From: Macrostomum lignano
Lineage: Eukaryota
Direction of reading: 5' to 3'
Length of the DNA stretch: 64,000 nucleotides
NCBI GenBank assembly: GCA_002269645.1
Contig: NIVC01000460.1
Span: 310,001 to 374,000 of the forward strand
Shown here: in pieces, positions 5,997 through 60,316 of the stretch
Position numbering within the stretch: the first letter of the stretch is position 1
How the letters are laid out: every line of letters begins with the position of its first letter
Position numbers and translations under genes: made by a program
The notes under the pieces: generated by a model
Seen by the model: only the letters and a program-made list of their open reading frames with translations
The model's database searches: none
What the model was told of the DNA's origin: nothing

Positions 5997-6853
5997 ACTG
6001 CTTGAATGTGGCGGCAAATGAGGAGGGGAGTGAGGCCACTCGGGCAACAGTTGCAACAGTTAAAGAAAAATGGCAAAAGACAGCAAAAGAAGCAAAAGAA
6101 GCAAATGGCAAAAGAAGCAGCAAAACTTGCTACACAGCATTCTGAGACTGCAATGCGAGAGGCGATGGAGGCAGCAGAACTGACACCTGATAAAGTACAA
6201 CCCAGCATAGTCACGATTTCTGAGATGAGCGGAATCCCGGCGCTAGACAATTTTCATTAAAAATTAGGAGAGAACTGGCGGATTCTTTCAATTCCTCAGA
6301 TAGAATAGTCACAGCCTACAACAGCCATGTCTGGGAATTACAAGAAATACAAGGAAGAGATTGCATCATATCCGTCAATGGCCGCTATCTCTTGACGAAG
6401 CTCAAGATGAAAACAAACGGAATGCTCTCGGCCTACTTTTCCGTGCGTCTGCCACATAAGGCGAACAAGAAAAAAAAGACTGAAGTTTGCGGATTCATAA
6501 AAAAGGCGATTAAGGAATGTTGTACTGATGCGCACTTGGTAATGATCGCTGGCGATTGGAACATGGAGCCAGTCAAAATAAGAAACTTTCTCGCCGACAT
6601 ATCGCCCCAGCTGGCTTTCCAAGTTGGTCGAACAAACGATTTAAGAAGCAAAAAAGGCTGACTGATCGACAACTTTGCACTGATTGATCAGCGACCCAAT
6701 AGAACGGCCAGCTTCGGCGCGAAGAGGATAATGAATGAGATGCAAGTCGAGAAAGTCACGACTCATGCTCCGATCTGGGCAGAGAGAGGTTCGACTCACC
6801 CCGAGCAGAGAGGAATGAACTCTCAAGAGTCTAGCAGATGCAATCGAGAATAG
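5997..6853 (+). pseudogene. Array unit 1: Ala/Lys-rich helical segment plus C-terminal EEP (endonuclease/exonuclease/phosphatase) domain, disrupted
   Basis: Motifs QPSIVTISE, AGDWN (6551), IDNF and TTHAPIW (6758). Disruptions: TAA at 6258, a frameshift near 6285, TGA at 6659, and a frameshift in the helical part. Confidence 0.75.
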
Positions 6854-8409: not shown

Positions 8410-8545
8410 CATAAATGGCACTCAGTATACGCCATACTCATACTTTTCTGACCGCCGTATAATGACAGAGCTGCGAAACGTATGGACAACGCATACTCCG
8501 ATCAGGGCGGTGGTTCGACTTCCTGCAATGATGCCTGAGTCGCCT
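8410..8545 (+). pseudogene. Fragment of the EEP C-terminus from another paralogue
   Basis: RIMTELRNVWTTHTPIRAVVRLP aligns with WIMNEMQVEKYTTHAPIWAEVRLT at 14461-14535. Confidence 0.65.
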
Positions 8546-8559
8546 TACATTCAGGAACT

Positions 8560-9684
8560 ATGCTATCAGTTAGAGAGAAGCACATTTATAATCAGGATCT
8601 GCAGCAGAATTATTTGGATGGCCAGTACTCGCAGTCTGGGCACCCGGCACACATCTCAAAGCTATCCATCACAGAATCAGTTCTACGGAGGACGGCTTTT
8701 AACCTGCCTGGCCTGACTACCTTGTCTCATCTCTCTACTGTCTCATCTCTATCCAGTCTCATCTCTCTATCCTGTCTCATCTCTCTATCCTGTCTCATCC
8801 CTCCCCTATCTCATCTCTCTATCCTGTCTCATCTCTCCCCTATCTCATCTCTCTATCCTTTCTCATCTCTCCCCTATCTCATCTCTCTATCCTTTCTCAT
8901 CTCTCCCCTATCTCATCTCTCTATCCTGTCTCATGAGACATCCAATGCGGTCCACTGTCATTTTTTGGATCCTCTCTTTGGCCCGCGAGCTGTGTGTCGA
9001 GATTGCTCGCAAATGTACGAATATATGGGATGAGACAACTTTGTGGCTTCATTTGAAAACCTCAAAGGAAAGAGTCTTCCCGGTGGGCTGATTGAAATAG
9101 CCTTTGCGGCGGCAACGCAGGCATCAGCGAGAGCTTTAGACGCGGTGATTTTGCTGACACCGAATGGATTGCAGCCGGCACGTGCAGCAACGACATTGAT
9201 GGAGCGAATTGATGAGGCAATCAATGCGGTAACGACTTTGATGGAGCTAACTAATGCGGCGATGAGTTTTCACGAATCTTTGAATCAGTCAAAAGATGCG
9301 GCAAATAAATCTCTGCAATTCATGAATGAGACGAAGGTTACGGTATTCATGCTTGAGAATGTTCAAGATGCCGAGAGAGCATCAATACGAAGTATAGAAC
9401 TTATTGTCGACGGATCGATGCGTCAGGCACGTGTTGAGGTAATAAAATCCCAGGAGTCTATGAGTAAGGCAGGGAGTTGTCTGGAGCTTATCAGGAACAT
9501 AATAAATAAGGAAAACTTTTTTGAGGAGTCAACGAAAACAGAAAAATGGGCGAAAAGCGCGGATTCTCAGGCGGTTTCAATAGATGAAAGGTACAGGGAG
9601 GCAATGGTTGCGGCTGAGACTGCAGTTACGCATTTTCAGCCGGAAATAACGGCGAAATATACTCGTATAATTTTTTTTAACTAA
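8560..9684 (+). pseudogene. Array unit 2: N-terminal region (HIYN...ITES...VCRDC) plus PGGLIEIA helical segment, lacking the EEP C-half
   Basis: ORFs 8560-9033 and 9043-9684 share one frame, split by a single TGA. PGGLIEIAFAAATQA matches PSGLVEITFSAATQA (17149) and AGGLREIAKLAAAQA (about 12475). A minisatellite sits at 8720-8935. Confidence 0.6.
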
Positions 9685-10029
9685 CTCATTAATTAGGTTG
9701 CGGTAAACGCATATCATCAACGTGTTTTGATTGTGTGCAGCAAATTAAACTCAAGTGTGTTCTTCTACATTAGTTCAGATTAATGGATACCTGAATGACA
9801 TCAAAGCCATTGGATGGGTGCTTAATCAAGTGTCATAGAACATAGTCTCCTGCCAGGAGAGAGATGAGACAGGATAGACATGACATAGACATAGTCTCGT
9901 GCCTCATCTCTCTCCTGTCTCATCTCTACGCTACATGTAGCGGTTTTGTTGGAATCAAAGCAATGAAAGTCGTTAGTCGATCTTTCTCAGTGCCTCTCCT
10001 AATGTTAGTGCAGTAACTGCCTCTCTACA

Positions 10030-10640
10030 GTTACACGTTACAGGAGAGATGAGACAGGGGATGTGAGACAGGAGAGAGATGAAACAGGAGAGAGATGAGA
10101 CAGGAGAGAGATGAAACAGGAGAGAGATGAGACAGGAGAGAGATGAGACAGAACAGAAGAGATGAGACAGGATAGAGAGATGAGACAGGAGAGAGATGAG
10201 ACAGGAGAGAGATGAGACACAGAAGAGATGATACAGGAGAGAGATGAGACAGGAGAGAGATGAGACAGGAGAGAGATGAGACAGGAGAGAGATGAGACAG
10301 GAGAGAGATGAGACAGGAGAGAGATGAGACAGGAGAGAGATGAGACAGGAGAGAGATGAGACAGGAGAGAGATGAGACAGGAGAGAGATGAGACAGGAGA
10401 GAGATGAGACAGGAGAGAGATGAGACAGGAGAGAGATGAGACAGGAGAGAGATGAGACAGGAGAGAGATGAGACAGGAGAGAGATGAGACAGGAGAGAGA
10501 TGAGACAGGAGAGAGATGAGACAGGAGAGAGATGAGACAGGAGAGAGATGAGACAGGAGAGAGATGAGACAGGAGAGAGATGAGACAGGAGAGAGATGAG
10601 ACACAGAAGAGATAAGACAGGAGAGAGATGAGATAGGACG
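10030..10640. repeat. 16-bp minisatellite (ACAGGAGAGAGATGAG)n, reverse-oriented relative of the 1-1140 family
   Basis: Tandem unit visible. Confidence 0.96.
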
Positions 10641-10699
10641 GAGATGAGTTACAATACGTGGGTGCTAGGTAAAGCAGTCTACCTGAGAAGCCCGGCTCT

Positions 10700-11714: not shown

Positions 11715-12275
11715 GGTCAGGGACTGGGATCAGTGGCCAGAAGATCAGGGACTGGGATCAGTGGCCAGAAGATCAGGGACTGGGATCAGTGGCCAGAAGA
11801 TCAGGGACTGGGATCAGTGGCCAAAAGATCAGGGACTGGGATCAGTGGCCAAAAGATCAGGGACTGGGATCAGTGGCCAGAAGATCAGGGACTGGGATCA
11901 GTGGCCAGAAGATCAGGGACTGGGATCAGTGGCCAGAAGATCAGGGACTGGGATCAGTGGCCAGAAGATCAGGGACTGGGATCAGTGGCCAAAAGATCAG
12001 GGACTGGGATCAGTGGCCAGAAGATCAGGGACTGGGATCAGTGGCCAAAAGATCAGGGACTGGGATCAGTGGCCAGAAGATCAGGGACTGGGATCAGTGG
12101 CCAGAAGATCAGGGACTGGGATCAGTGGCCAGAAGATCAGGGACTGGGATCAGTGGCCAGAAGATCAGGGACTGGGATCAGTGGCCAGAAGATCAGGGAC
12201 TGGGATCAGTGGCCAGAAGATCAGGGACTGGGATCAGTGGCCAGAAGATCAGGGACTGGGATCAGTGGCCAGATC
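11715..12275. repeat. 28-bp minisatellite (GGGACTGGGATCAGTGGCCAGAAGATCA)n
   Basis: Tandem unit visible. Confidence 0.95.
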
Positions 12276-12371
12276 AGGGACTGGGGTCAGGGACTGGGGT
12301 CAGGGTCTGGGGTCAGTGGCCATGAGATCAGGAACTATCTGACTGTGACCCGCATTTTTATCACCCCCCAG

Positions 12372-14550
12372 GCTGAAGGATGGCTGCCGGGGACGCAAAG
12401 CCGACTTCAAGTTCTTGGCGTTGGCCATCAACGCGGACGGTTCAAATCGACGAGAAGAGCTGAAGGGGGACAAACGCCGGTGGACTGCGCGAGATCGCCA
12501 AGCTGGCGGCAGCGCAGGCGGCCATGCCGGAGAAGGCGGAAGCCCTGGCGGCTTTGCACGTCTCACAGCATGCGTCAAGAAAGGCGAAGGAGGCCATCAA
12601 AACGGCAAGAGAGGCATCAAAGGAGGCGGTAGTGAAAGCAGCGCATGCGTCAGAAGCGGAATTGGGGGAAGCAGAGGAGAAATTTAAGGAGGCAAGAGAG
12701 AAAGCGGAGAAGGCGGCAAATGTGAATTGGCAGGAGGTAGAGAAGCAAGCAGAATCTGCGGCAGAGTTTTCTCAGACTGCGATGCAAAAGGCAAGGAGGC
12801 GGCGATGAAGGCGGCAACCTACAATAAAGTACAGCTCAGCATAGTTACGATTTCGGAAATGAGCAGAGAGAAGGCACTAAATAAATTTGTAACCGAGTTA
12901 GGTTAAAGTTGGGATAAACGCTCGTGTTGTGTCACTACACGTGATTGAACAGCTCCCTAAGATTGTTCTGCAGCGAACGAGCCTGGAGATGGCGTCAGCC
13001 CACTGACCGGACTGACTCCGCTACTGAGCGTAGGATCGCGTCGAGGTAAGGCAGTCAGTCCGTCCCTAGAGCGTACGGTACCCACTTTGCTCGAGATCCA
13101 AATGATTAATGAACACAGACGCGAGTCTTACTTTGACTTCCAATCGGCACGGCGGTAAGCAAGGCAGCGAGTTCGTATTGAGATTTCGATATTGCAGTTT
13201 GTTGATTCCGTAGAGTCTAGTGCCAGGTGTCAACGGGCACACGCTCACCCTGCCCACCGCCAGCAATTCTCTATTTATTTAGGCTGCCTGGCGTAGGCCC
13301 TAGGGTCTCACGCCAGACAGCATTATCAACAACCAACTTGTTGGCCAATCACCAATTGACAAGGGACAAGGGAATTGACAAGTGCTAACAAAAAGGGGAG
13401 AGAGGGGCCAGGCCAGCCAATCCGGCTGGGTACGCATAATAAGAAAAAGGGGCAGAGAATAAGGGTTGATACACAACTGGGGGGGGGGGTTTACGCAGAC
13501 AGAATGGGGGGGGGGTTGGCGCAGGCACGCGGCCAGGGGGGTTGGGAGTGCAGTGCCGGGCACACTTGACCGAGAGCCAGAGATTGCTCATCGGTGCAAG
13601 TGCACCCGGGCACAACACCCTCCCCCACCACAAAAAGAGGGTTCATACCATAGACTAAAAATTAAAGTGCATAAAAGTTTCGCACTCCCGACATCAGTTG
13701 AGCCGGCAGGGTCTTGTCGCCGCGCTCCGCTGCCAGCCAAGTCGCCGTCGTCCGTCGGTTTTCCTGGGTTTTCCGCAAACGGTGCTGATGATGCTAGCAG
13801 GAGCCGCTCCGAGGGCAGGGCAGCGATGCGTCGCGCATGCCAGCTGCTGTGTACCAGCCGAGCGGTGACCTTGAACTTGAGGCCCGGTAACGTAGCCAGG
13901 TACAGCCCTAGAGTGTCTACGGGCCAGTACGACGACTCGGTGACTAGAATGCGACCTTTCACGACGCCATTGTCGCCGGGAAGTTGCACGAACTCGTACA
14001 CTCGCACTGTTTCAAAAGCAATTCTGCAGATAGGATAGTCACGGCCTTCAACACATACGTCTGGGAATTGATAAGCACAAAAGATAAAGAAGAGTTCATA
14101 GCGTCTGACAATGGCCGCTATCTGATAACAAAGCTCAGGATGAGAGCAAACGACATGATCTTGGTCTACTTCTCTGTGCATCTGCCACACAAGACAGGCA
14201 AGGACAAAGCTTATCAGTTGATAAAAGGTGCTATTCAGGAATGTTGCTCTGATGCAGCCTTCATTATGATTGGTGGCGACTGGAACATGGAGCCTGAAAC
14301 TATTGCAGAGGAATTCAGAAAAATTCAACATAAGCTCGCCTTCAATACCAATGATGGCCGAACTAGCGCTGAAAGTGTAGAAAACGCAATCGACAACTTC
14401 GCACTGATGGCTGGGTCATCCAGTGAAGCACAGCTGTGGACACCATGCTTTGGCTCGAAGTGGATAATGAACGAGATGCAAGTCGAGAAGTACACCACTC
14501 ATGCTCCGATTTGGGCGGAGGTTCGACTTACCCCCAGAAATGAGGAATGA
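12372..14550 (+). pseudogene. Array unit 3: most complete split-EEP gene (N-motif, helical insert, EEP C-half), interrupted by an LTR element
   Basis: 3' splice site with a CTGAC branch point before 12372. Motifs FLALAINADG (N at 12430), SIVTISE (E at 12856), VYFSVHLPH, GGDWN (14275), IDNF (14389) and TTHAPIW (H at 14500). Two single-base frameshifts, TAA at 12904 and a 1083-bp insertion. Confidence 0.8.
12925..14007 (-). mobile_element. Truncated LTR retrotransposon: 3' internal fragment, PPT and one 693-bp LTR
   Basis: LTR 12925-13617 is bounded by TGTTGTG...CACAACA. Polypurine tract GTGGTGGGGGAGGG on the minus strand (13618-13631) abuts the LTR. Removing 12925-14007 restores the host reading frame (RS-CFKSNSADR). 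Confidence 0.8.
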
Positions 14551-16870: not shown

Positions 16871-17299
16871 CATTGGACAGTGTTCTAAGTTTTTTACCAC
16901 ATGTAAAAACTGTCAGATATGAGTTTGAAGTCTTTCTCATGATACATTTTACGATTTTTCCACAAAAGGTGGCTTTAGTGTTGGAGGAACTGAGATATGT
17001 GACTTTGGGATTAGGGACTGTCTAACGGTGACCCGTATTTTCATCACCCGCAAGGCCGTGAAGTATGGCGACCACGCTTGACAACTCTGACTGCACTAGT
17101 TTCTTGGCGCTGTCCATCAACGCGGACGCTTCAAAACATGACATGTTTCCTAGTGGACTGGTTGAAATAACATTTTCAGCTGCAACGCAAGCCGAAAAGG
17201 TCTCAAAAGTAGCGAGTGAGTATTGGAATAAGGTGGCAACGCAGGCCACTGAGAAAGTGAAGGTGGGGACTACGAAGTGGCAGAAGGTGAAGAATGAGT

Positions 17300-17712
17300 T
17301 AAAGGAGAAGAAGGAGAAGGAGAAGAAGAAGGAGAAGAAGGAGAAGAAGGAGAAGGAGAAGGAGAAGAAGGAGAAGAAGAAGAAGGAGAAGAAGGAGAAG
17401 GAGAAGGAGAAGAAGGAGAAGGAGAAGAAGAAGAAGGAGAAGGAGAAGAAGAAGAAGAAGGAGAAGAAGGAGAAGGAGAAGAAGAAGAAAGAGAAGGAGA
17501 AGAAGAAGAAGGAGAAGAAGGAGAAGGAGAAGAAGGAGAAGAAGGAGAAGGAGAAGAAGGAGAAGAAGGAGAAGGAGAAGAAGAAGAAGGAGAAGGAGAA
17601 GAAGGAGAAGAAGGAGAAGGAGAAGGAGAAGAAGGAGAAGGAGAAGAAGGAGAAGGAGAAGAAGGAGAAGGAGAAGAAGAAGAAGAAGGAGAAGAAGGAG
17701 AAGGAGAAGAAA
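17300..17712 (+). repeat. (AAG/GAG)n trinucleotide repeat encoding a Lys/Glu tract
   Basis: In frame with ORF 17065-17718. Confidence 0.95.
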
Positions 17713-18516
17713 CTGTAAAAGCGGTAGCATCAAAACATTCTGTCAATGACAATGCGTTCCAAACTCTTCTTGAAGCAAACGTAGTGAAATCCCAAGTTAG
17801 ATATTTCAGTTTTCTGTCGTAATGCTGTAATGCAACAACAAATATCAAAATTTCAAGTGTTTTCAAATCTCAATGAGCCAATCAACAGAATGCTTCTCCT
17901 ATTACTAATGTTATTATTGTTACATTTGATTTTGTTGTGTCCTCATCAATTGAAAATTTTCCACCATTTTCTGCTGAGTCCATTAAACTTAAAATTTGCT
18001 TCTAGGACGCTCTAACAGTAAGTGATGAAGCACGACCTAAGATTTTTAGTGATTGTTGTGCGCTATATTTTATTGATTTATTTGACAAAAGAACTCTTAT
18101 TTAACCAACAGATTAGACTTTTTTTTCCGCAATACACAAGATAATACACAATATTAAAGCTCCCTGACGATCATAAACACACAGAAACATTTCGTTTTTT
18201 CTCCTTCCTTCATAATTTCAATTTCTTCATTTGATTCTTTCACTTCTAATCGATTGAAGTTTTATGGGTACTACATAAGAATTTGTTAATTTGTTAATTT
18301 ATTAATTTGTTAATTTGTTACTTTGTTAATTTATTAATTTGTTAATTTGTTAATTTGTTAATTTGTTAATTTGTTAATTTGTTAATTTGTTAATTTAAAA
18401 CACAATTTAATGAATATTGTACCATGACCTTTGTGCCCGCTGGGCACTTATTCTTGCCTTTTAATGCCATAGACTACATTTAAGCCCGCTTGCAGGAGTC
18501 AAACTTACTTTAATTC

Positions 18517-19029: not shown

Positions 19030-20170
<1,141 letters not shown>

Positions 20171-20314: not shown

Positions 20315-22776
<2,462 letters not shown>

Positions 22777-23089: not shown

Positions 23090-25889
<2,800 letters not shown>

Positions 25890-25908
<19 letters not shown>

Positions 25909-27052
25909 TCCCAGATCCTGATCCCAGATCCTGATCCCAGATCCTGATCCCAGATCCTGATCCCAGATCCTGATCCCAGATCCTGATCCCAGATCCTGAT
26001 CCCAGATCCTGATCCCAGATCCTGATCCCAGATCCTGATCCCAGATCCTGATCCCAGATCCTGATCCCAGATCCTGATCCCAGATCCTGATCCCAGATCC
26101 TGATCCCAGATCCTGATCCCAGATCCTGATCCCAGATCCTGATCCCAGATCCTGATCCCAGATCCTGATCCCAGATCCTGATCCCAGATCCTGATCCCAG
26201 ATCCTGATCCCAGATCCTGATCCCAGATCCTGATCCCAGATCCTGATCCCAGATCCTGATCCCAGATCCTGATCCCAGATCCTGATCCCAGATCCTGATC
26301 CCAGATCCTGATCCCAGATCCTGATCCCAGATCCTGATCCCAGATCCTGATCCCAGATCCTGATCCCAGATCCTGATCCCAGATCCTGATCCCAGATCCT
26401 GATCCCAGATCCTGATCCCAGATCCTGATCCCAGATCCTGATCCCAGATCCTGATCCCAGATCCTGATCCCAGATCCTGATCCCAGATCCTGATCCCAGA
26501 TCCTGATCCCAGATCCTGATCCCAGATCCTGATCCCAGATCCTGATCCCAGATCCTGATCCCAGATCCTGATCCCAGATCCTGATCCCAGATCCTGATCC
26601 CAGATCCTGATCCCAGATCCTGATCCCAGATCCTGATCCCAGATCCTGATCCCAGATCCTGATCCCAGATCCTGATCCCAGATCCTGATCCCAGATCCTG
26701 ATCCCAGATCCTGATCCCAGATCCTGATCCCAGATCCTGATCCCAGATCCTGATCCCAGATCCTGATCCCAGATCCTGATCCCAGATCCTGATCCCAGAT
26801 CCTGATCCCAGATCCTGATCCCAGATCCTGATCCCAGATCCTGATCCCAGATCCTGATCCCAGATCCTGATCCCAGATCCTGATCCCAGATCCTGATCCC
26901 AGATCCTGATCCCAGATCCTGATCCCAGATCCTGATCCCAGATCCTGATCCCAGATCCTGATCCCAGATCCTGATCCCAGATCCTGATCCCAGATCCTGA
27001 TCCCAGATCCTGATCCCAGATCCTGATCCCAGATCCTGATCCCAGATCCTGA
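25890..27052. repeat. Highly homogeneous 13-bp minisatellite (CCTGATCCCAGAT)n
   Basis: About 89 near-identical units. Confidence 0.98.
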
Positions 27053-27535
27053 TTAGCAAAATCATACACTGATTTGACCTCTGACTTACTAATTTAATAA
27101 ACTAATCCAGAATATTATACACTTAACACTATAGCACGAAACACCTTGTATTCAATCTGGCTTAAATGCTTTGTGTTTGCTTTTTCAAACGTAACTGACA
27201 TATCGATAAATAGATAGAAACAACTTTTTTAGTAGTACATGTAGATTTTTTTTCATATTTCAGTTTAAAAACACAGCGACGACTCTGATCTCGCACTCTA
27301 TATTTTTCCATTTAATTTTTTCCTGCTTTTACATATGGACCCATTGCCTCAAAAGTGCATCGAATGAAACTAGTCGAGCCGGGCAAATTTTTCGCCTAAT
27401 TGAACTGTATTCCCTCGCGATTTGCTTGCACTGTCTATGGCCCGGGGCCCGGGGCAAAAGCAATGCTGATGAGCGTGTTTTCCCCCGAGGCATTGAAATG
27501 TGCAACAAGAACGCTAAATAGACAGCGGATCCGGT

Positions 27536-31004: not shown

Positions 31005-32110
31005 ATACAAAAATGGGGTTAAATGGCTACCCTAAGTCCTTGGCATACACAATCGCATACACAACCCCTGGCGAAATTTGTTGGTATACACTATTGGTGT
31101 ACACAATAACACAGCCATGCATACTTTTTTGGCGTACAAATTTTGGTGAATAAATTCATGCCATACATGAAAATTGTAATATAAATTAATGTTTTTACGT
31201 AAAGTAACGGAAAATTTATATCGTTAGGGATAAAATTTTTGCTTCTTTGTAATTAGCAATAAATAAAACTAGTGTAAATTTTTGCTAAGAGTATCAATTT
31301 TGCATCATATTTTTTGTAGGTATAATTTAATTATACTAAATTAGTAGGCCTATCATTGGTGACAATTATAGAGACTACTTTATAAACTCAAGACAAGTTA
31401 ATATAATAGTATCTAATTATACCTAAGGTTTGATATTCAATTCTCAACTTACTTAGAATAATTTGTGTCTTCAGGAAAGACAGGAACTTGTACCTTTCTG
31501 CATTGCTTTGGTTTACTTAGTTATAAAATAGGTAATACAATTAACTAGGATGATTGAGAGCATATGTGGTGACCCCCCTTCCCCTAGTCTTTATACTATA
31601 TAGCTATATATAGGTAGCCTTTAGATACATTGCACAAAAACTATAGCTAAGTTGGTTACATATCTAGCCTATTTGGGGTAGGTATAATCACACTGTATTG
31701 AAAAGAAATATGTATTATAATTATATAAGACTAAGAGTGTTTTTAGTTTGAAAATCAATAATATCTACTTTAAAATTGAAAAAATAAATATTCTAAGCAA
31801 CAAATAAACTACTTTTATTAAACTAAAAAACTTTATTAAAATTTTTTAATAAAGTTTTAAAGTTTTTAAGTTTTAAAGTTTAAAGTTTAAAGTTTTAATA
31901 AAGTTATTAAAACTTTATTAAAAACTTTTATTAAACTACAAAGAAACTAAAAATAGAAATATTCTAATAATAATACGTAAAATAAGAGCAGTATGGCTTA
32001 TATAATGTGCACTTTGTTATATGCATACTAATAAGGATGCCAACAAGATTTATTAATAGGTTTTAAAAAGAAGAAATAAAAATGTACATAACTAAGTATA
32101 AAAATAAATA

Positions 32111-34029: not shown

Positions 34030-35847
34030 ATGAAGGTCAAACGCCTGGCCAACGCAGCCGGAGTCGCCCTGCCACTCGACGCGGACTATGCAGAGAGTCT
34101 CGAAGGCGGCGGTGCAGCTGCGGCAGATTCAGCTGGCCAAGCCGGCTCCGGCGTTGCCGAGGATGACGACGAGGGCTTGGATCTGGACGAATTCATTCAG
34201 CAGATGATGATGGATGGTGGCGGTGACGGCCAAGCGCTGGTGGCTGACGAGCTGCCCATGCCCGACCAGCAGCAGCAGCAGCAGCAGCCTCAGTATTACA
34301 CTGGGCCGGTCATGCAGCCAGCAGCGGCCGGGCTTGGCGTTGCTCAAGCCAACGGATTCGTCGATAATGGCTTTCGTTACCATGGCAACTATGGCGTCCA
34401 ACAGCCGTCGCTAGTACCGCCGCAGTTCAATCTGCAGTCTGCAGCTACCGCTAATTCATCTTCCGTCATCTTTCCACTGTCTGGTCCGCAGTCGCTGGGT
34501 TCAGAGTTTCAGCAGCAGCAGCAGCAGCAGCAGACTGCTCAGGTGTCCCAGCAGCAGCAGCAGCAGCCGCCTTCGGGAATTCGAGCTGCCATTAATCTGC
34601 GTAAGCGACCTCTGCAATCGCAGCAGCAGCAGCAACAGCTTCTGCTAGATTTGCCCGAATCGTCTAACGACGCATTCGATACTAAGCCTATTATCCAGAA
34701 GCAGCAGCAGAAGCAGCAAAATCAGGAATCCAATTCCAAATCGTCTGTTGGCGGTGATTCGAATTCAACAGCGATAACAGCTGGGGACGCTGGCGGTGGA
34801 GATTTGACTATAGAGGATCCGAGCGAGAGAAAACGATTGAAGAATGCTCAATTAGCTAGGTGAGTTGACCTGCTCAGATTGTATCAGCGTCACTTTGTTT
34901 GTTGGGTCAATTCCAGGGTCAGTGCCAGTGTGTTGGGTCAGTGCCAGAGTCTTTAGGGTCAGTGCCAGAGTCTGTAGGGTCAGTGCCAGAGTCTGTAGGG
35001 TCAGTGCCAGTGTCTGTAGGGTCAGTGCCAGTGTCTGTAGGGTCAGTGCCAGTGTCTGTAGGGTCAGTGTCAGTGTCTGTATTGTCAGTGCTAGTGTCTG
35101 TAGGGTCAGTGCCAGTGTCTGAAGGGTCAGTGCCAGTGTCTGTAGGGTCAGTGCCAGTGTCTGTAGGGTCAGTGCCAGTGTCTGTAGGGTCAGTGCCAGT
35201 GTCTGTAGGGTCAGTGCCAGTGTCTGTAGGGTCAGTGCCAGAGTCTGTAGGGTCAGTGCCAGTGTCTGTAGGGTCAGTGCCAGTGTCTGTAGGGTCAGTG
35301 CCAGTGTCTGTTGGGTAAGGGTTAATTTCGATTGAGTCGGGGGTCTGGACCAACACCTATTGTATGCTATAACGAAGCTTCTAAAAATTGCACTTCAATG
35401 TTCAGAGAAAATCGAGAAAAGAAAAAGCAACACGTTCAAGAGCTGGAGAATCGAGTCCGAGACCTCGAATCGGCATTGTCCGCCTCGCGCGAGCGCGAAT
35501 CGAGCTTAACAAGCGAATTAAGCTCATCTAAGCGGCATAACAACTATCTGCTGTCGGTGCTGTACAGGCAGAGCGAGCTGGCCTCGTTCTTGTCCACCGT
35601 GCCTGCGCTGGTGTCCCGAGAGCGCCAGCTGCAGCTGCAGCAACCGCAAGCAACTAGAGATACGGACAGTCAGACAACTACAGGCGGAATTTGTTTGCAC
35701 CTGGACAATCAGGAGACTGTATCTGTTTTGTTGTGCGACAAATGCGCCGCTCTGGGTGGCGGCGGCAGCGTCGGTGACGCGGTGCTAGGCGGATCTGCTT
35801 CGCAGCCTTCGTCTTTAACTGGGAATCAGTCGAATCTGTCGCTTTGA
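34030..35847 (+). CDS. CREBZF: CREBZF (Zhangfei)-like bZIP transcription factor, 2 exons (34030-34859, 35406-35847)
   Basis: Spliced basic region ERKRLKNAQLAR-ENREKKKQHVQELE plus leucine zipper. The C-terminal GGICLHLD..VSVLLCDKC motif matches the CREBZF-family GGVCLHV..VSVEFC motif. The phase-2 intron is compatible. Confidence 0.85.
34915..35312. repeat. Intronic 21-bp minisatellite (GGGTCAGTGCCAGTGTCTGTA)n
   Basis: Visible. Confidence 0.95.
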
Positions 35848-48572: not shown

Positions 48573-50024
48573 ATGGTTCCACTCGAACAAACAGAAGCCA
48601 CTCGACTCATTGAAGATTCCAACGGCAGCACCAGCCGGCGGATTGTTCCGATTATTAATAAATCTATCGCTCTTCTGCTTGCTATGAAATTGGTCGGCAA
48701 CGTTCTTGAGTACCAGCTGGCCTACTTCAACATTGACGCTTACATGCAATACCACCAGAATAGCAGCAACTGCCAGCGCGTGCCGTGCTCGCAGAAAAGC
48801 AACGCGTACAGCAACAGCCTGGTGTTGGGCGCTGCATTTGTGCTATCGACCCTTAGCGGCCTGATATCCGATCGGTTTCTTGGCTGCGTTCGCGTCCTCG
48901 TCGCCGGTTGCATCATCCAGTTGTGGGCGTCTGTTTTGTTCCCGATGCTGATCAGGACGTCGCTTCTGTGCCAGAGTCGCGCTTGGTACTATGCAATCGC
49001 TGCTAGTATGACATTATCACTAGGCCTGGTTGATCCCCTCCTGCTGTACGCCATCATGCAGCACACAAACGGGCCGCGATCTAGACGGTTTATATTGTTT
49101 TCATACTTTGTTGCTGCCGCGGGAACCGAGTGCCTTGGCTGTTTGCCGGCTATACTGAGGTACGTGACGCAGGAGTCGGGAGTAGCCGATAACTTTGATT
49201 TTATTGGAATCGTGTTTAGCGCGCTGCTAGTTGCGTGCGTGTTCTTCCTAGCCAAAGATGAAAACGTTTGTGACAGACTGCGAACTGAAAACTTCGAGTT
49301 TCCACGACTGAAAAGGCTTCGAAGATATTACATTGCTGTTGCAGGCTTTATTCCATTCACGACGGTCATTATCTTGTGTAGAAATGTTTTTTATTTGACC
49401 GAGATCAAATACTATGCTAAGTATACTGATGAAAATGTGAATTACGCCATCACCATCGGGAGCTATCAGTTGGCTACTGTTGTCTTCAGCCTGCTCGGAG
49501 CAGCTGCTGCGGCGGCTAGAAAGTTCCCTCGCTGTCTGACGATTCGTATTCGAATCCAGTTGGGTCTCGGTCTCTTGCTAGCTTGCAAGATCATACTGTT
49601 CGTGGCGTCATTCTTTCATTGTGAATTATCAAATCTTGGTGAAAGTCACCCGATAGCTATTCAAGGCGCCTATTTTGTGGCCGGATTCATCGACGGACTA
49701 GCCAACTCGCTGACCGACGTGGCCATGTACGAACTGGTCGACTGCATTGCGGAGAGTTGCGCCCGAGCTATGTACTTGGGGATATTCTACACAACGTGGG
49801 GCTTGGGCCTCATGCTAGTGGGTATTGTTGTTAAAGTCTTAAAGTTTCTTCCATCAGAGGGTCACGACATGATTCCGGGGCCTGATGGATTGCCGCACTT
49901 CTATATCAGATATGCAATTGTCATTGGTCTTCTATTAATGTGCATGGGCTACTATTTTAAAGTAGCCTTACCGTTTGCGGAGCCCTTATGTTCAAGCGAT
50001 GAATCGGATCAAGAATTTGACTAA
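48573..50024 (+). CDS. Intronless MFS transporter, SLC15/POT (PTR2)-like, 483 aa
   Basis: About 11-12 hydrophobic segments. The LSGLISDRFLG motif after the second helix is POT-like. No canonical ExxER motif. Confidence 0.75.
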   Translation: MVPLEQTEATRLIEDSNGSTSRRIVPIINKSIALLLAMKLVGNVLEYQLAYFNIDAYMQYHQNSSNCQRVPCSQKSNAYSNSLVLGAAFVLSTLSGLISDRFLGCVRVLVAGCIIQLWASVLFPMLIRTSLLCQSRAWYYAIAASMTLSLGLVDPLLLYAIMQHTNGPRSRRFILFSYFVAAAGTECLGCLPAILRYVTQESGVADNFDFIGIVFSALLVACVFFLAKDENVCDRLRTENFEFPRLKRLRRYYIAVAGFIPFTTVIILCRNVFYLTEIKYYAKYTDENVNYAITIGSYQLATVVFSLLGAAAAAARKFPRCLTIRIRIQLGLGLLLACKIILFVASFFHCELSNLGESHPIAIQGAYFVAGFIDGLANSLTDVAMYELVDCIAESCARAMYLGIFYTTWGLGLMLVGIVVKVLKFLPSEGHDMIPGPDGLPHFYIRYAIVIGLLLMCMGYYFKVALPFAEPLCSSDESDQEFD

Positions 50025-54993: not shown

Positions 54994-57900
54994 ATGAGTT
55001 CCATTGAAGCCAGAGAGGCTGCAGCAGATGGAATACACCAGCTGCATGCAAATATTATACAGCAAGTTCAAAATGGTAAGTTTTATGCAGCAAGTTTGTG
55101 TTTGCATACTTTCCATTATTCTACTTAAAGTAGCAAATATGACGAATCGTTTTCAAAATATGCTTATCTGACAGATTGCCGGCCTGACCTGCTTCAGCCA
55201 ATGCTGGAGGCTCAGTTCCTACTGGTGCAGAAACTTTTGACCACTTCTGATGCCAATGCGAAATCCCAGCCAGAAGTGAGTGTTGCCCATTTGATTTTCA
55301 GCATGCCTATTGGGCGATATGCTCTTCACATTAGATGCTTCTTGTAAAACTTTGTAGGTAAATCATGGCGACCAGCAGCTTGAGCCTGACCCAGCCGGCA
55401 CCTCGGCGGAGTCGCTCGCCAGCACAGTTTCGTTGCTGCGCAACCAGCTGAATTCGGTGACTGTTCAGCGCGACGAATTGCAACAGCGTCTGCTTGAAAG
55501 CAACGCTCGACAGTCTGCGGAAGCTGGCGCGGACGAGCTGGCTAAACTGAAGGACAAGTACGCGCGCCTCGTAAAGCAGTGCAAAATCTTCAAAGAAACA
55601 ATTCGACAACTAAAAGAGGACCAACAAGGGCAGCCGCAACAGTCAGTCGAGTCGCAAGCGAGACGCGATGAATTAAAAGAGAAATTCGAACAGCAGGACG
55701 CACATAAGCAGCAGTTAATTGAGCAACTACAGTTGGAGCTCGATCGGCAGAGAGAACAATTCGAACAGTGCAATGCGCAGAAGCAGCAGCAGATGGAGGA
55801 GATGTTGCAGCAAATTGCTGAACAAAAGCGTCACTTAGAGCTTCAAGAACAGGCAAAGTCAGAACTTGAAGGGCTCAAAGTACAAGTAGCTTCGCAGGCG
55901 CAACAATTGGAGCTCATGGGAGAGCAAAGTCTGCAAATGGAACAGCTTCAACACCAGCTAGAAGACCAAAGTCAGCAATTAAAATTGCAAGATAAGGAAA
56001 AATTCGAAACGGAAGCGCTGAAACAAGAAATTGAGGAGCTGCAAAAGCAGCTTAAATTTGAGAGGCAAAATAATTTTCAGGCTAATGAAGTTCAGCAGCA
56101 ATTGGAGCTGAATGAGATGCTGAAGCTAGAAATTGAAAAGCTGAAAAAGCAACTTGAGGAGGAGAGGCAGCAGTTTAATCTGCGCATCGAACAACAACAT
56201 CTGCCGGGTCGGGAAGAAGAATTCAGCGCATTGCATAGGAAGCAGCAGCATCTTGAGCAGCATATACATCAAATAGAGGCCGACAAGCAGCAGCAGCTAC
56301 AACAGATCGAAGCTAAAAAGCAGCAGCAATTGGAGACGAAAGTACAGCAGATCAAGGCTGAGAAGCAAGAGCAATTGCAACAGATCGAGGCTGAAAAGCA
56401 GCAGCAATTGGAGATGAAAGTTCAGCAGATCGAGACTGAAAAGCAAGAGCAATTACAGCAGATCGAGGCTGAAAAGCAGCAGCAATTGGAGATGAAAGTT
56501 CAGCAGATCGAGGCTGAGAAGCAAGAGCAATTACAGCAGATCGAGGCTGAAAAGCAGCAGCAATTGGAGATGAAAGTTCAGCAGATCGAGACTGAAAAGC
56601 AAGAGCAATTACAGCAGATCGAGACTGAAAAGCAAGAGCAATTACAACAGATCGAGGCTGAAAAGCAGCAGCAATTGGAGATGAAAATTCAGCAGATCGA
56701 GGCTGAAAAGCAACAGCAATTGGAACAGCAAATACAGCAGCTTGAGGTTGAGAAACAACAGCAGCATGAGCAACAGATTCAGAAGCAACAGCAGTCACTA
56801 AGAGACACAGGTAGTCTGTCTGCACAAACGTCTGCTGAGTCACAAGACGTCGTAGTTAATGAGCTAAAGCTGAAGTGCGCCAAATTAATTAAGTTAAACA
56901 AGACAATGCGTGAGCAGCTCAAGCTTGCGGAGTCTCGCAATAGTTCCATCTCATCAGCTGTTGACGATGTGTCTTGTCAGACGGAATGTGACCAAACTGA
57001 TCAAACTTTAGAGGCATCGTCGTTTAATTTAGATGAAAATCTGGCGGAACTTAGTCGGCAATTAACGGAAAGTAAAGCAGAGTCTGAACAGTTTCAATCT
57101 ACTATCGATTCTCTATCAAAGCAGTTAGCTGAAGCAGGAAGACAGTTAGATGAAAGTAAATCTGAGTGTGAGCGCATTATTCTTACTGCAACTGATTTTG
57201 AAAGGAGGCTCGAAGAATCTGAGCAACAGTTGGCATCTAGTCTAAAAGAGTCTGAGAAATATCATTTGCGTGCAACTGACGCAGAGGAAAAACTTACTGT
57301 TAGTATTAGTGAATCAGAGCAGCTCCGCATGAAGCTTGCTGTTACAGAGGAGAAGCTGCAAGATACTGAAAGACGAGTTGAAATTCTGAGCGCCGAAGCC
57401 GAGCAATTCCAGCTCAGTGCAACTGATGCCGAGCAGAGACTTTTGGAAACCGATAAACAGTTCAAAGCTGGCCTTGATGAATTGGAGCAACTTCGAATCT
57501 CTTCAAAAAAATTGCAGGAGAGGCTAGCAGAAGCTGAAAGGCAAGTTGGGGCTAGTCAAGCGGAGTCTTATCAATTTCGACTCATTGCTGATGATGCCAC
57601 AAAGAGAGTTGCAATGGCTGAGAGCCAGCAGGCAGCTAGCAGTTCCGAAATCGAACAGCTTCAACTGGCGCTTGCCAACGCAGAGGAGAAGCTGTCTAAA
57701 ACAATGGATCAGTTGGCTGATATCAGTTCTGAGAATGAGCAGTTGCGCCTTAAGCTTTCTTCCAATGAATCTGATGAAAAATCGTCAGTAATACAGAAGC
57801 AGCTGGAAATTAGCCAAAGGAAGTCAGAGCAACTTGAACAGACCCTCGCTGAAGCAACAGAAAAGTTAGCTGACCTTGAAGGTCAACTTATCGCTAGCCA

Positions 57901-60316
57901 AACCGAATCGGAGGAGCTGCGTCAACAATTATCTTCAGCTAGAAGCAATGCGGATACTAAATTAGCTGAATTAGAAAGACTATTAGAGGAGGCCAAGGCT
58001 GAGTCTGAGCAGCTACGACAAAGTTTCACTAGTGCAACCGAAAATCTTAGTGAAACTAGGAGCGAGTTGCTAGCTAGTAAAGCCAAAACTGACGAACTGC
58101 AATTGACTGTGTCGGCTTTCGAAAATAAGCTAGCTGAATCTGAACAGTTTCTGTCAGCTTGCAGACATGAGGCCGAGCAGTTCAAGCAAGCGCACACTGA
58201 TGCCACTCAGAAATTACAATTTGCCGAGGAACAGGTCTCAGTAAAGGTGGCAGAGATTGAACGGTTGGAAATGTTTACTACTGAAGCGAGGGAACGGATT
58301 TCGATGTTGGAAGAACAGTTGTCATCAAAAACATCTGAAGCTGAACATTTGAGCCATGTTGCTGCTGAAGTAGAGAAGAGATTGTCCTTGGTTGAGGAGC
58401 AGCTATCAGAAAAAACGTCCGATGCTGAGATATCAACTGGCACAGCTGAAGTAGCTGAGCATGCAAAGCACGCAGTGCTAAACAATGATTCAGAAAAGCT
58501 AGTAGAGAACGAACGGCCGTTGTTTGCCGATCAATCTGACACAAAGCAGACTGACCAGTTCAGCTCTACTAAAGACACTGATTTTGATGAAATTAGCCAG
58601 CTAAAACAGGCAGTAGCAGAAGCAAAGGCGGCGCAGATGGCAGAAGCTACCAATGCTGAACAGTTACAACTTCGTCTCAGCAGTATGGAATCGGTTCTAG
58701 ACCAGCTGAAAAATCAAAATGCTGCTCTTCTGAGTGATCTTGATCTAGGTAGAAAGGCATTTGAGAAGCTTCTCTTGGAGAACGGGCAGTTGCGTGAGCG
58801 TCTTGCTGCAGCTGGATCTTTGGATTTGTCAACTGTACCTTCTGATGTTACTGAGACCTCTACGGACTCAACTGGAGCAGTCGAAGGCACCGATCCCGCT
58901 GCCGTGCAGGTGAAACTGCTGAACACACAGTTAAGCCGAGCCAGAGGTCAGCTGTTGCAACTGCGCTCCGAACGAAACAAAATTTACCACGAATACATGC
59001 GAGTTCGCCGCGAAAAAGAGGACTGTGAAAGTCAGCTAGCAGCCGTTTCTACGACGTCGGCGTCGGAAGAAAGGCAACCAAAGCAGATGGTAAACAGCGG
59101 TAGCTTGCACTGTTCGAACACAGATAAAGGTCCCGCATCGGCACAGGCGGCTGATGCAGAGGTTCAACGCGCTGCCGCTGCTGCTGCCGGTCAGCGCGAG
59201 GAAGAGCTGCTGGCAATCCGATCGGAGAACGAGGGTCTTCGATTCCGACAGAGCCTACTCGAGACGAAAGTGAAGAAAATGGAGATTCGCATGCGGGCAC
59301 AGCGCGAGAAGCTAGAGCGCTACCAACTACGCTTCGACGAAAAGGATCGCGAGCTGGAGCAGTTAGTTGACAAGGTTCGGCATCATCGAGCTCTGTTTGA
59401 CAATGAGAAGTCGGCTAGACTGCGTGAAGTCAATCAGTTGAAGTCGGCCCTAGCCGCCGAGGAGGCTCGCGCTCGCCGTATGGAGAAGCAGCGCGGCGGC
59501 GGTGGACGCGGAGAAACCCAGGCTCTTCTCGAGGAGCTGAGCGCAGCCAGGCACGCCAAACAGGAAGCTGAGCAACGTTACGACAGCGAGATTGCCACGC
59601 TGCGGGCTCAACTAGACGAGCTCGCGGCGGACAGCCAGGAGCTGCGCACTCAATTGGTGGAAGCGAAGCGGCGCCGAGCTACCGGGAATAACAACGAAGC
59701 AGAAATGCCACCAGCGCCAACCGAGTGCTCCGAGTGTAAGCGGCTGCGCGAAGCGGTGCGCGTTTTAGAGGCTCAGAAGCAGCGGCACCGTTCGGCCAGT
59801 CAGAGTGAGCAGCAACACGAGCAGTTGCTCAGATCGGCTGCCGCTGCGTTGGACACGGCTCTCCAACTGCGCGGTCAGCCTGGCGTTGTTGAGCCGGCGG
59901 CAACGCTTGACGCGCTATTGCGCAACTGCGCCGCACGTATTGAAGCGATGGCTGCTACGGTTGACGCTGCTTCTGCTGCTAGTTCTGCTGCAGATATTGT
60001 CAGTGTCGAGACTCAGACATCAACTACAAACAACGAGGTTTCAACTTTGAATGCTAGAGTTCCCTCTGCGACTGTGTCTGTATCGACTGAGACGACGATT
60101 GAAGACGCGCCGGATGCTGTCGCTGTCGACATGCCAACACTGCCGATGCTAGCTGGAGCCTCGACGTCAGCGCTTGGCGAGTGGATTCGTCAGACCCGAC
60201 CGCTGCTGCGCGGCTGGCCAACTCCGCTACGTCGAGCGCGGGTGGGACCGCGCGGATTCGCTATCGCCTATCTGTGCGCCGTGCACCTGCTTCTGCTGTA
60301 TTGCATGATGGCCTAG
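54994..60316 (+). CDS. GOLGB1: Giantin (GOLGB1)-like tail-anchored golgin, about 1713 aa; exons 54994-55075, 55175-55275, 55358-60316
   Basis: Very long Q/E/L/K coiled coil. C-terminal TM segment FAIAYLCAVHLLLLYC carries the Tyr/His signature of giantin/golgin-84/CASP anchors. Introns are phase-compatible. The 5' exons and exact orthology are tentative. Confidence 0.75.

Follow-up and report, generated by a model that had tools for sequence, protein, structure and literature searches.

The stretch of flatworm DNA analysed here (64,000 nucleotides from Macrostomum lignano, referred to below as the window) raises the question of whether an EEP-type catalytic domain can be split by a long helical arm and still belong to a working enzyme. 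Two motifs of such a domain, INADG (12427–12441) and TISE (12847–12858), lie unusually far apart in one gene copy, unit 3. The original prediction was that they belong to one EEP domain, apparently split by a coiled-coil insert of roughly 130–140 residues that varies between copies and would serve as a stalk or as an oligomerisation or sensor arm.

Results

Reading frames of unit 3

Translation of the window places both motifs in frame 1. The Asn codon is at 12430 and the Glu codon at 12856, a spacing of 142 codons that agrees well with the ~140 predicted. The Ala-rich helical sequence expected between them is also present, and its reading is in frame 2. Frame 1 itself carries a TAA at 12685–7, and no continuous reading runs through the two motifs. 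Three frame changes within 524 bp are needed to read the unit (Table 1), and the coding path is stopped again by the TAA that opens a 1,077-bp insertion. With three frame changes, a TAA and an insertion within the domain, unit 3 has no single translatable EEP reading.

Table 1 Features of the window, with positions numbered from its first nucleotide
Feature	Position	Strand	Basis or remark
Unit 1: extension tail, TISE strand, EEP body	6006..6818	+	
C-terminal piece of another unit (…THTPIRAVVRL…)	8444..8530	+	isolated between satellites
Unit 2: 213 open codons, helical region only	9043..9684	+	
28-bp satellite, 22 copies	11717..12336	.	abuts the upstream side of unit 3
Unit 3: leader, also in unit 4	12340..12379	+	sequence comparison; an acceptor-like pyrimidine tract with AG immediately precedes the ATG
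Unit 3: ATG and first four codons (MAAG), frame 2	12380..12391	+	frame path
Unit 3: frame change 1, two leftover bases	12392–12393	+	frame path; between ATG and INADG
Unit 3: strand beta1, Asn/Asp motif (FKFLALAINADGSNR) and loop ELKGDK, frame 1	12394..12474	+	homologous to BOX15_Mlig011052g1 residues 5–30
Unit 3: frame change 2, surplus base	12475	+	frame path
Unit 3: start of helix alpha1 (GGLREIAKLAAAQA) and ~100-residue Ala/Glu/Lys-rich extension, frame 2	12476..12787	+	
Unit 3: frame change 3, leftover bases, one base missing	12788–12789	+	frame path
Unit 3: end of extension, strand beta2 with catalytic Glu (KVQLSIVTISE), next helix (MSREKALNKFVTELG), frame 1	12790..12903	+	homologous to unit 1 6162–6269 and BOX15_Mlig011052g1 residues 49–77
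Unit 3: 1,077-bp insertion, starting with in-frame TAA	12904..13980	.	
Unit 3: remaining EEP domain, frame 1, 189 open codons and stop	13981..14550	+	SVHLPHK, GGDWN, IDNF, THAPI present
Unit 4: ATG, strand beta1 (FLALSINADAS), alpha1 start, KWQK block, microsatellite, stop	17065..17718	+	

The two motifs are not chance occurrences, since the N-terminal piece, the TISE piece and the body at 13981–14547 all match one family. A family HMM recognises the body at E = 2e-39, the Asn piece at 7e-4 and the Glu piece at 5e-3, and over 26 aa the N-terminal piece is 62% identical to the beginning of the M. lignano protein BOX15_Mlig011052g1 (E = 3e-4). Between them the pieces keep all of the family-invariant residues (in INAD, TISE, SVHLPHK, GGDWN, IDNF and THAP).

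Each of the three frame changes adjoins a short homopolymer (G4, A3 and A4). Homopolymers are sites where long-read assemblies err, and unit 3 might on this account be a working gene, its frame changes being assembly errors, its 1.08-kb block an intron and its product an EEP enzyme with a variable arm for oligomerisation, targeting or regulation. The intact catalytic residues and the open C-terminal body are what such a gene would show. However, the three breaks fall within 24 homopolymer runs in unit 3, as against none in about 320 runs over the ~9.3 kb of other open reading frames in the window. Because the latter are free of frame breaks, assembly error is an unlikely source of those in unit 3.

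Nearest relatives and fold

A protein search with the joined pieces of unit 3 matched only two proteins, the M. lignano hypothetical proteins BOX15_Mlig011052g1 (P0002, 293 aa) and BOX15_Mlig009936g1 (P0001, 296 aa), both of which carry the UniRef name Endonuclease/exonuclease/phosphatase domain-containing protein. The matches have E-values of 6e-27 to 5e-34 and the bodies are 41–44% identical. Like unit 3, these relatives have the motifs FxALAINAD…, …S(I/L)xT(I/V)SE, SVHLPHK, GGDWNM(E/K)P, IDNFAL and (T/S)HAPI in identical order, and an acceptor-like tract before the ATG. Both are single-exon genes. They differ from unit 3 in having neither frame changes nor the 1,077-bp insertion, in an Asn-to-Glu spacing of 41 as against 142, and in being single-copy loci whereas unit 3 is part of a satellite-flanked array. 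At the BOX15_Mlig009936g1 locus the ATG has been lost (ATA) and the annotated product lacks the Asn strand.

The AF2 model of BOX15_Mlig011052g1, the closest intact relative of unit 3, has pLDDT 89.3 and pTM 0.85 and shows the four-layer alpha/beta sandwich of the EEP superfamily (DNase I-like fold), to which TDP2, DNase I, nocturnin and exonuclease III belong. Strand beta1, which carries the Asn, spans residues 7–16, helix alpha1 30–46 and strand beta2, which carries the Glu, 50–58; alpha1 is the only helix between the two strands. A Foldseek search of the PDB with this model ranked TDP2, DNase I and nocturnin highest (E ~1e-12) and, with ANGEL2 also matched, gave E-values from 1e-12 to 1e-10, and the BOX15_Mlig011052g1 sequence had no match among PDB sequences. 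The residues invariant in the family are N16, D18, E57, H143, D176, N178, N222 and the His before P255. The clade keeps the Asn, Glu, His, Asp-x-Asn, Asn and His motifs of the superfamily, the last in the form (S/T)HxP, lacking the Asp that usually precedes this His. A Pfam search gave no PF03372 match for any piece of the window or for either M. lignano protein, and membership is therefore shown by the structure and by the wider family, in which 19 of 38 members match PF03372 (E ≤ 0.1, best E 6.7e-9). Members of the clade are found in Macrostomum, in a prasinophyte transcriptome and in many metagenomes. Unit 3 is an EEP-type domain, nuclease/phosphatase-like, as the family matches and the fold of BOX15_Mlig011052g1 bear out, and its sequence similarity to the EEP superfamily is remote.

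The body of unit 3 also gave a weak match to the cytolethal distending toxin subunit B (CdtB) family NF011787 (19.7 bits, E 3.8e-4), and CdtB chains turn up at E 0.4–0.5 when PDB sequences are searched with the profile of the clade. We rejected a relationship to this toxin, as the match is far below the cut-off of 189 bits and TDP2 and DNase I rank first in the fold search. The two share the generic EEP/DNase I-like fold; unit 3 has no partner subunits and lies in a eukaryotic context.

The helical extension

The Asn and Glu strands are much farther apart in unit 3 than in any relative found, the spacing of 142 comparing with a median of 38 and a range of 32–43 in 35 family members. The true surplus is accordingly ~100 residues rather than 130–140. 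It sits at the C-terminal end of alpha1, after the homologous start of that helix (GGLREIAKLAAAQA), which is common to units 2, 3 and 4 and BOX15_Mlig011052g1. When the joined reading of unit 3 was aligned to all family members by MAFFT, the family Asn motif fell on residues 107–120 of the extension; this alignment would have forced an artefact on a structural model and was rejected.

Read in frame 2, the extension of unit 3 gives an Ala/Glu/Lys-rich translation of high helix propensity. The helical character that had been proposed is therefore retained; for a coiled coil there is only a modest hydrophobic periodicity, strongest at 3.5 residues, and a low-confidence model of unit 2, which is all-helical with four long helices at a pLDDT of only 54.8. 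The extension was also considered as a tandem repeat, which was rejected as it holds only scattered imperfect repeats of 23–26 nt.

The composition of the DNA allows another view, namely that the extension was never coding and is purine-rich filler gained after the copies had died, its helical translation being a by-product of DNA rich in GCN, GAR and AAR. In unit 3 the extension is indeed poor in T (11.8%) and all three frames are fairly open, and in unit 4 the insert is a microsatellite. Against this, frame 2 of unit 3 is open throughout, for which we estimate a chance of ~0.01 from the per-codon stop probability, and the helical open reading frame of unit 2 has an ordinary composition (24% T). 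The latter stays open over 213 codons (P = 6e-7 by chance), as against 21 and 15 stops in the other two frames of unit 2, and this indicates that the extension was once translated. Across units 1, 2 and 3, moreover, the extension keeps both its collinearity and its frame with respect to alpha1 and beta2. We consider the filler explanation quite improbable.

Three blocks are common to the units (GGLxEIxxxAAxQA, KWQK and TAMxEAMxAAE…KVQxSIVTISE), and the extension is collinear between units 3 and 2 with 32% identity over 85 aa. Because the units hold such collinear, homologous blocks, the extension can be taken as ancestral. Judged by these comparisons it is real, inherited, helical in character and purine-rich. 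The differences in its length among units fit slippage and decay. The prediction that the insert varies between units is thus right as to length, but the variation looks like divergence and indels on collinear homologous ends rather than design: the first ~85 residues are homologous across units and the K/E repeat of unit 4 is a plain (AAG/GAG)n microsatellite.

It might also be that two genes lie side by side, one for a helical protein, best kept in unit 2, and one for an EEP protein, the apparent insert being an artefact of their juxtaposition or fusion. Unit 2, with 213 helical codons and neither EEP body nor Asn motif, has the look of such a gene, and the unit 4 open reading frame too is without an EEP body. 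However, the helical part is preceded in units 3 and 4 by the Asn strand, which belongs to the EEP core in the BOX15_Mlig011052g1 model, and passes straight into the Glu strand in units 1 and 3, and it starts with a sequence (GGLxEI…) homologous to alpha1 of BOX15_Mlig011052g1. It thus sits within the EEP domain, not next to it. Nor does it have a free-standing homologue in the protein search with the unit 2 open reading frame, which found no relative at E ≤ 1, and we regard two adjacent genes as very improbable. Derivation of the helical part from a gene neighbouring the M. lignano loci was rejected, there being no similarity.

The 1,077-bp insertion

The insertion is richer in GC than the surrounding gene and has the direct repeat AAGTTG on both flanks. 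At the point where it interrupts unit 3, unit 1 and the M. lignano genes, which are intronless, run on without a break. No second copy was found in the window or in L001, no terminal inverted repeats were found, its open reading frames have no Pfam match and Rfam gave no match over the whole window. A GT (12889)…AG (13983) pair would excise the 1,077 bp in frame, and on the strength of this pair the insertion may be an intron, as a working gene would need. On the other side, VTELG, encoded by the 15 bases that follow the putative donor, has homologous coding sequence in unit 1 and in M. lignano, and the relatives of unit 3 are intronless.

Other units and the comparison with nSMase2

Satellites of a related GGGACTGGGATCAG type lie upstream of units 1 and 4. 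Units 1, 2 and 4 are structurally truncated, not just frame-shifted. Unit 1 has lost its N-terminus, where a satellite abuts; its reading changes frame at least three times and meets an in-frame TGA near 6661, and an Arg replaces an invariant His (SVRLPHK, at the position of His143). In unit 2 the Asn motif has decayed to SFEN; the open reading frame has a stop immediately upstream, starts without an in-frame ATG and is not followed by an EEP body. Unit 4 has neither Glu strand nor EEP body, and its (AAG/GAG)n microsatellite (17282–17711) begins at a naturally Lys/Glu-rich block. All copies in the 64-kb window are defective.

In human nSMase2 (SMPD3) an insertion of ~165 residues (175–339) lies between Asn130 and Glu364 (PMC9697135). 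The statement that a single short helix separates these strands in EEPs therefore holds for the clade of unit 3 but not universally. By motif order the nSMase2 insertion interrupts an EEP/DNase I-type catalytic domain at the topological site that is lengthened in unit 3, a likeness of architecture only, as no sequence relationship to the clade was detected. The family profile reached SMPD2 among PDB sequences at E 0.023, over only 33 residues around the GDxN motif, and sphingomyelinases were absent among the 50 Foldseek matches listed for the BOX15_Mlig011052g1 model. The nSMase2 insertion, further, belongs to a working, regulated enzyme, whereas every copy in which the unit 3 type of extension was seen is broken.

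That the site tolerates large insertions in nSMase2, and that the unit 2 helical frame is open far beyond chance, would both suit a working gene with a variable arm. The truncation of the neighbouring units speaks against it, as does the finding of no intact long-arm protein among 5.8 billion proteins, and taken with the clustered frame breaks and the coding sequence beyond the putative donor this makes a working gene unlikely.

Discussion

The evidence is probably best explained by a tandem, satellite-flanked array of gene copies with an inherited extension of alpha1, unit 3 being a recently inactivated pseudogene rather than a functional enzyme that carries a sensor arm. The region would be the 5′ half of unit 3, a copy of a lineage-specific, originally intronless flatworm gene for an EEP-fold protein. 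The common ancestor of the copies would already have had the C-terminal end of alpha1 lengthened by ~85–100 Ala/Glu/Lys-rich residues encoded by purine-rich DNA. Both ends of the extension probably return to one point on the surface of the beta-sandwich, and for this reason it could be tolerated as a protruding helical arm. Purine-rich DNA of low complexity would be prone to slippage and small indels, and such slippage could account for the differences in length between units, the frame changes of unit 3 and the (AAG/GAG)n of unit 4.

We take unit 3 to be a recently inactivated pseudogene because it cannot be translated as one protein although its catalytic residues are all kept. Given these residues and the open C-terminal body of 189 codons, either the inactivation is recent at most or unit 3 is still used in some form. 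A working protein, as originally proposed, does not agree with a broken unit 3 among units that are all truncated or mutated, and a stalk, oligomerisation or sensor arm finds no support in a pseudogene array of which every copy is broken.

A doubtful prospect, and rather an unlikely one, is that intact, expressed members exist elsewhere in the genome, with a fast-changing helical arm of ~100–200 residues at the alpha1/beta2 junction. The same low expectation covers the reading as a whole, in which the arm would change in length and sequence by slippage in purine-rich codons and the window would hold its dead copies.

As it stands, what the window shows is a tandem array of gene copies in decay, set in a flatworm genome rich in repeats, and it matters little, its split-domain appearance arising from an inherited helix extension together with frame changes and an insertion. 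It does document a small, uncharacterised EEP clade that is sub-threshold in Pfam, it shows once again, after nSMase2, that the alpha1/beta2 junction of the EEP fold admits large insertions, and it offers a worked example of purine-rich helical coding sequence seeding the growth of a microsatellite. Should intact long-arm copies exist, their arm would amount to a diversifying appendage to an enzyme of nuclease/phosphatase-like type, and the copies would provide a natural system for the effect of such a helical appendage on an EEP enzyme.

The EEP family and its fold

The remaining C-terminal domain (body) of unit 3, the copy under study among four copies (units 1–4) of an endonuclease/exonuclease/phosphatase (EEP)-type gene, has only two matches among 5.8 billion proteins, the M. 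lignano proteins BOX15_Mlig009936g1 (P0001, 296 aa) and BOX15_Mlig011052g1 (P0002, 293 aa), at 42–43% identity. An exhaustive HMMER search with P0002 gave 38 family representatives, the majority unnamed metagenome or Logan sequences, with one cluster from a Mantoniella transcriptome. Asn16, Asp18, Glu57, His143, Pro145, Gly175-Asp176-x-Asn178, Asn222 and Pro255 are invariant or nearly so in the family alignment. The Pfam EEP model is matched by half of these relatives (19 of 38) and by neither the window pieces nor P0001 and P0002. With the family alignment as input, AlphaFold2 models P0002 confidently (pLDDT 89.3, pTM 0.85). The model places β1 at 7–16, ending at Asn16, a single helix α1 at 30–46, and β2, containing Glu57, at 50–58; a Foldseek search of the PDB with this model returned TDP2, DNase I, nocturnin, ANGEL2 and CNOT6L (E 1e-12 to 1e-10). 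Together, the Pfam matches, the predicted structure and the Foldseek matches establish the family as EEP members. A search of a viral library returned generic EEP proteins. The unit 3 body (13981–14547) reaches 19.7 bits with the NCBIfam model of the CdtB family, far below its cut-off of 189, and assignment to that family was rejected as generic fold likeness. Several family members outside the window carry an N-terminal Cys-rich motif, MVCGCCG…GCSC…H.C.

An extension between the Asn and Glu strands

In unit 3, the motifs INADG (12427–12441) and TISE (12847–12858) lie where the original prediction had put them, both in frame 1, and the distance from the Asn to the Glu codon is 142 codons, matching its estimate of ~140. 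The Ala/Glu/Lys-rich sequence reported between them is present but lies in frame 2, so that the split domain holds at the DNA level and not as an open reading frame. The corresponding spacing in the 35 relatives with both motifs is 32–43 residues (median 38); the excess in unit 3 is thus ~100 residues, and not the 130–140 aa first proposed. The frame-2 piece opens with GGLREIAKLAAAQA, homologous to the start of α1 in P0002, ARGLEQLVKDVQEE, which places the extra residues (the extension) after a normal α1 and before β2. The same block is also homologous to its counterparts in units 2 and 4. Alignment of the joined unit 3 reading with the whole family was unsuitable, the Asn motif being misplaced by MAFFT.

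Collinear blocks run through units 1, 2, 3 and 4 (GGLxEIxxxAAxQA; KWQK/KFKE/NWQE; TAMxEAMxAAE…KVQxSIVTISE), and a tandem repeat looked for in the unit 3 extension was absent. Between units 3 and 2 the extension is collinear over 85 residues at 32% identity, a match that is weak alone and anchored at both ends; such collinear, end-anchored matching among the units makes the extension older than the local duplications. The unit 2 ORF, of ordinary composition, has 213 codons without a stop (P = 6e-7), with 21 and 15 stops in the other two frames, and this openness beyond chance argues that the extension was translated. It also weighs against the extension being filler that never coded, which we consider quite improbable even though the unit 3 extension DNA is T-poor (11.8% T) and open frames are therefore cheap there. 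Even less probable is that the helical and EEP parts are two adjacent genes.

The helical character of the proposed coiled-coil insert is borne out by a high helix propensity and by the four long helices that AlphaFold2, run on the unit 2 sequence alone, predicts with low confidence (pLDDT 54.8), but the coiled coil itself is not, the strongest hydrophobic periodicity (3.5 residues) being modest. The unit 4 microsatellite begins exactly at the naturally Lys/Glu-rich block KWQKVKNELKEK, the outcome expected from replication slippage in GAR/AAR codons.

Probable inactivation of unit 3

The three frame changes of unit 3 fall within 524 bp containing 24 homopolymer runs of at least 3 bases, whereas six other ORFs of the window (~9.3 kb, ~320 such runs) have no break, making general assembly error an unlikely cause. 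These controls include a Gln/Glu/Leu-rich, coiled-coil-like ORF of 1,627 uninterrupted codons (55433–60316); a 483-codon, multi-pass membrane-protein-like ORF (48573–50024) also served to control assembly quality. Neither of these two ORFs has a Pfam match.

The body is separated from the Glu strand by a 1,077-bp block that starts with an in-frame TAA, exceeds the gene in GC content and lies between direct repeats of AAGTTG. Unit 1, in which the homologous codons follow one another directly, lacks it, and so do the two single-exon M. lignano genes; the block has no terminal inverted repeats, no second copy within the window and no Pfam match. That unit 3 is functional, its breaks being assembly errors and its block an intron, is unlikely: every break does adjoin a G4, A3 or A4 run, and splicing from GT (12889) to AG (13983) would excise the block in frame, but the 15 bases downstream of this GT have homologues in the relatives that are coding. 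We conclude that the region is probably a pseudogene, a copy of an EEP gene that is specific to the lineage and carries an ancestral helical extension. All the invariant residues are retained and the 189-codon body is open, so any inactivation would be recent.

The surrounding array

The window is eukaryotic and satellite-rich, without an Rfam match. A family HMM run against its six-frame translation found family sequence in units 1 and 3 and in a single fragment, and nowhere else. A GGGACTGGGATCAG-type satellite lies upstream of each unit, and the locus is a tandem array that appears to be in decay.

Coordinates of features in the window and at the M. lignano gene loci L001 and L002
Feature	Position	Frame	Description
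Unit 1	6006–6818		starts within extension, satellite abutting; at least 3 frame changes, in-frame TGA, invariant His to Arg
Fragment	8444–8530		isolated C-terminal piece
Unit 2	9043–9684		helical part alone; Asn motif decayed to SFEN, stop directly upstream, no body
16-mer array	10044–10648		
Unit 3, start	12380–12391	2	ATG and four codons
Unit 3, frame change 1	12392–12393		two bases left over
Unit 3, Asn strand and ELKGDK loop	12394–12474	1	
Unit 3, frame change 2	12475		one surplus base
Unit 3, α1 start and extension	12476–12787	2	
Unit 3, frame change 3	12788–12789		two bases left over
Unit 3, extension end, Glu strand, next helix	12790–12903	1	
Unit 3, interrupting block	12904–13980		TAA first; 1,077 bp in all
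Unit 3, remaining domain	13981–14550	1	189 open codons and stop
Unit 4	17065–17718		ATG, Asn strand, α1 start, then (AAG/GAG)n microsatellite and stop
(AGAC)n	19032–20170		1.1 kb
(TTAGTTAG)n	20634–22623		2 kb
(CAGA)n	23169–23526		
~1.4-kb array	25629–27065		reads as 478-codon 'ORF'
184-bp repeat, counterparts	L001 13390–13560; L002 13403–13573		

Many long ORFs of the window are satellites in translation. A 184-bp repeat (25102–25283, also 31497–31608) is 86–87% identical to DNA found 3.4 kb downstream of the EEP gene at each M. lignano locus; no other direct link at the DNA level joined the window to M. lignano. By eye, a Gln-rich bZIP-like gene seems to have two of its exons at 34030–34863 and 35332–35847 (…ERKRLKNAQLAR / …FRENREKKKQHVQELENRVRDLE…), separated by a block that holds a minisatellite (34899–35318); neither piece, searched singly, matched Pfam.

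Units 3 and 4 each have, immediately before the ATG, a pyrimidine tract that ends in AG (12340–12379 and 17030–17064), and in both M. lignano genes 'ctctctctgcag' precedes the start position (L001 ~9985–10000, L002 ~9920–9935). Spliced-leader trans-splicing is known in M. lignano, and these sequences look like candidate acceptors. At the P0001 locus (L002 ~9935–10000), ATA stands where P0002 has its start ATG, and the annotated P0001 starts at Met23, without the Asn strand; judging from this sequence, the homeologous P0001 copy may be defective too.

Discussion

The premise that one short helix separates the Asn and Glu motifs is true of this family and of most EEPs but is not universal: human nSMase2 has a large insertion (residues 175–339, between Asn130 and Glu364) at the topological site of the unit 3 extension (PMC9697135). 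Homology to sphingomyelinases was detected neither by sequence-profile search nor among the fold-search matches listed. A large insertion at the α1/β2 point is accordingly an architecture already known, and only this family's version of it, in dead copies, is new.

Beyond the flatworm genes, the clade was seen only in unnamed metagenome, Logan and MMETSP sequences (one Mantoniella); its patchy occurrence, together with the absence of introns from the flatworm genes, opens the question of a horizontal origin.

We take as demonstrated an EEP family, an inherited helical extension of ~100 residues at the α1/β2 junction, and the breakage of its copies. The extension would form a protruding helical arm, tolerated by the fold because its ends meet, and its purine-rich, low-complexity DNA may be prone to indels; this would account for the varying length of the extension as well as for the frame changes, in an array that appears to be dying.
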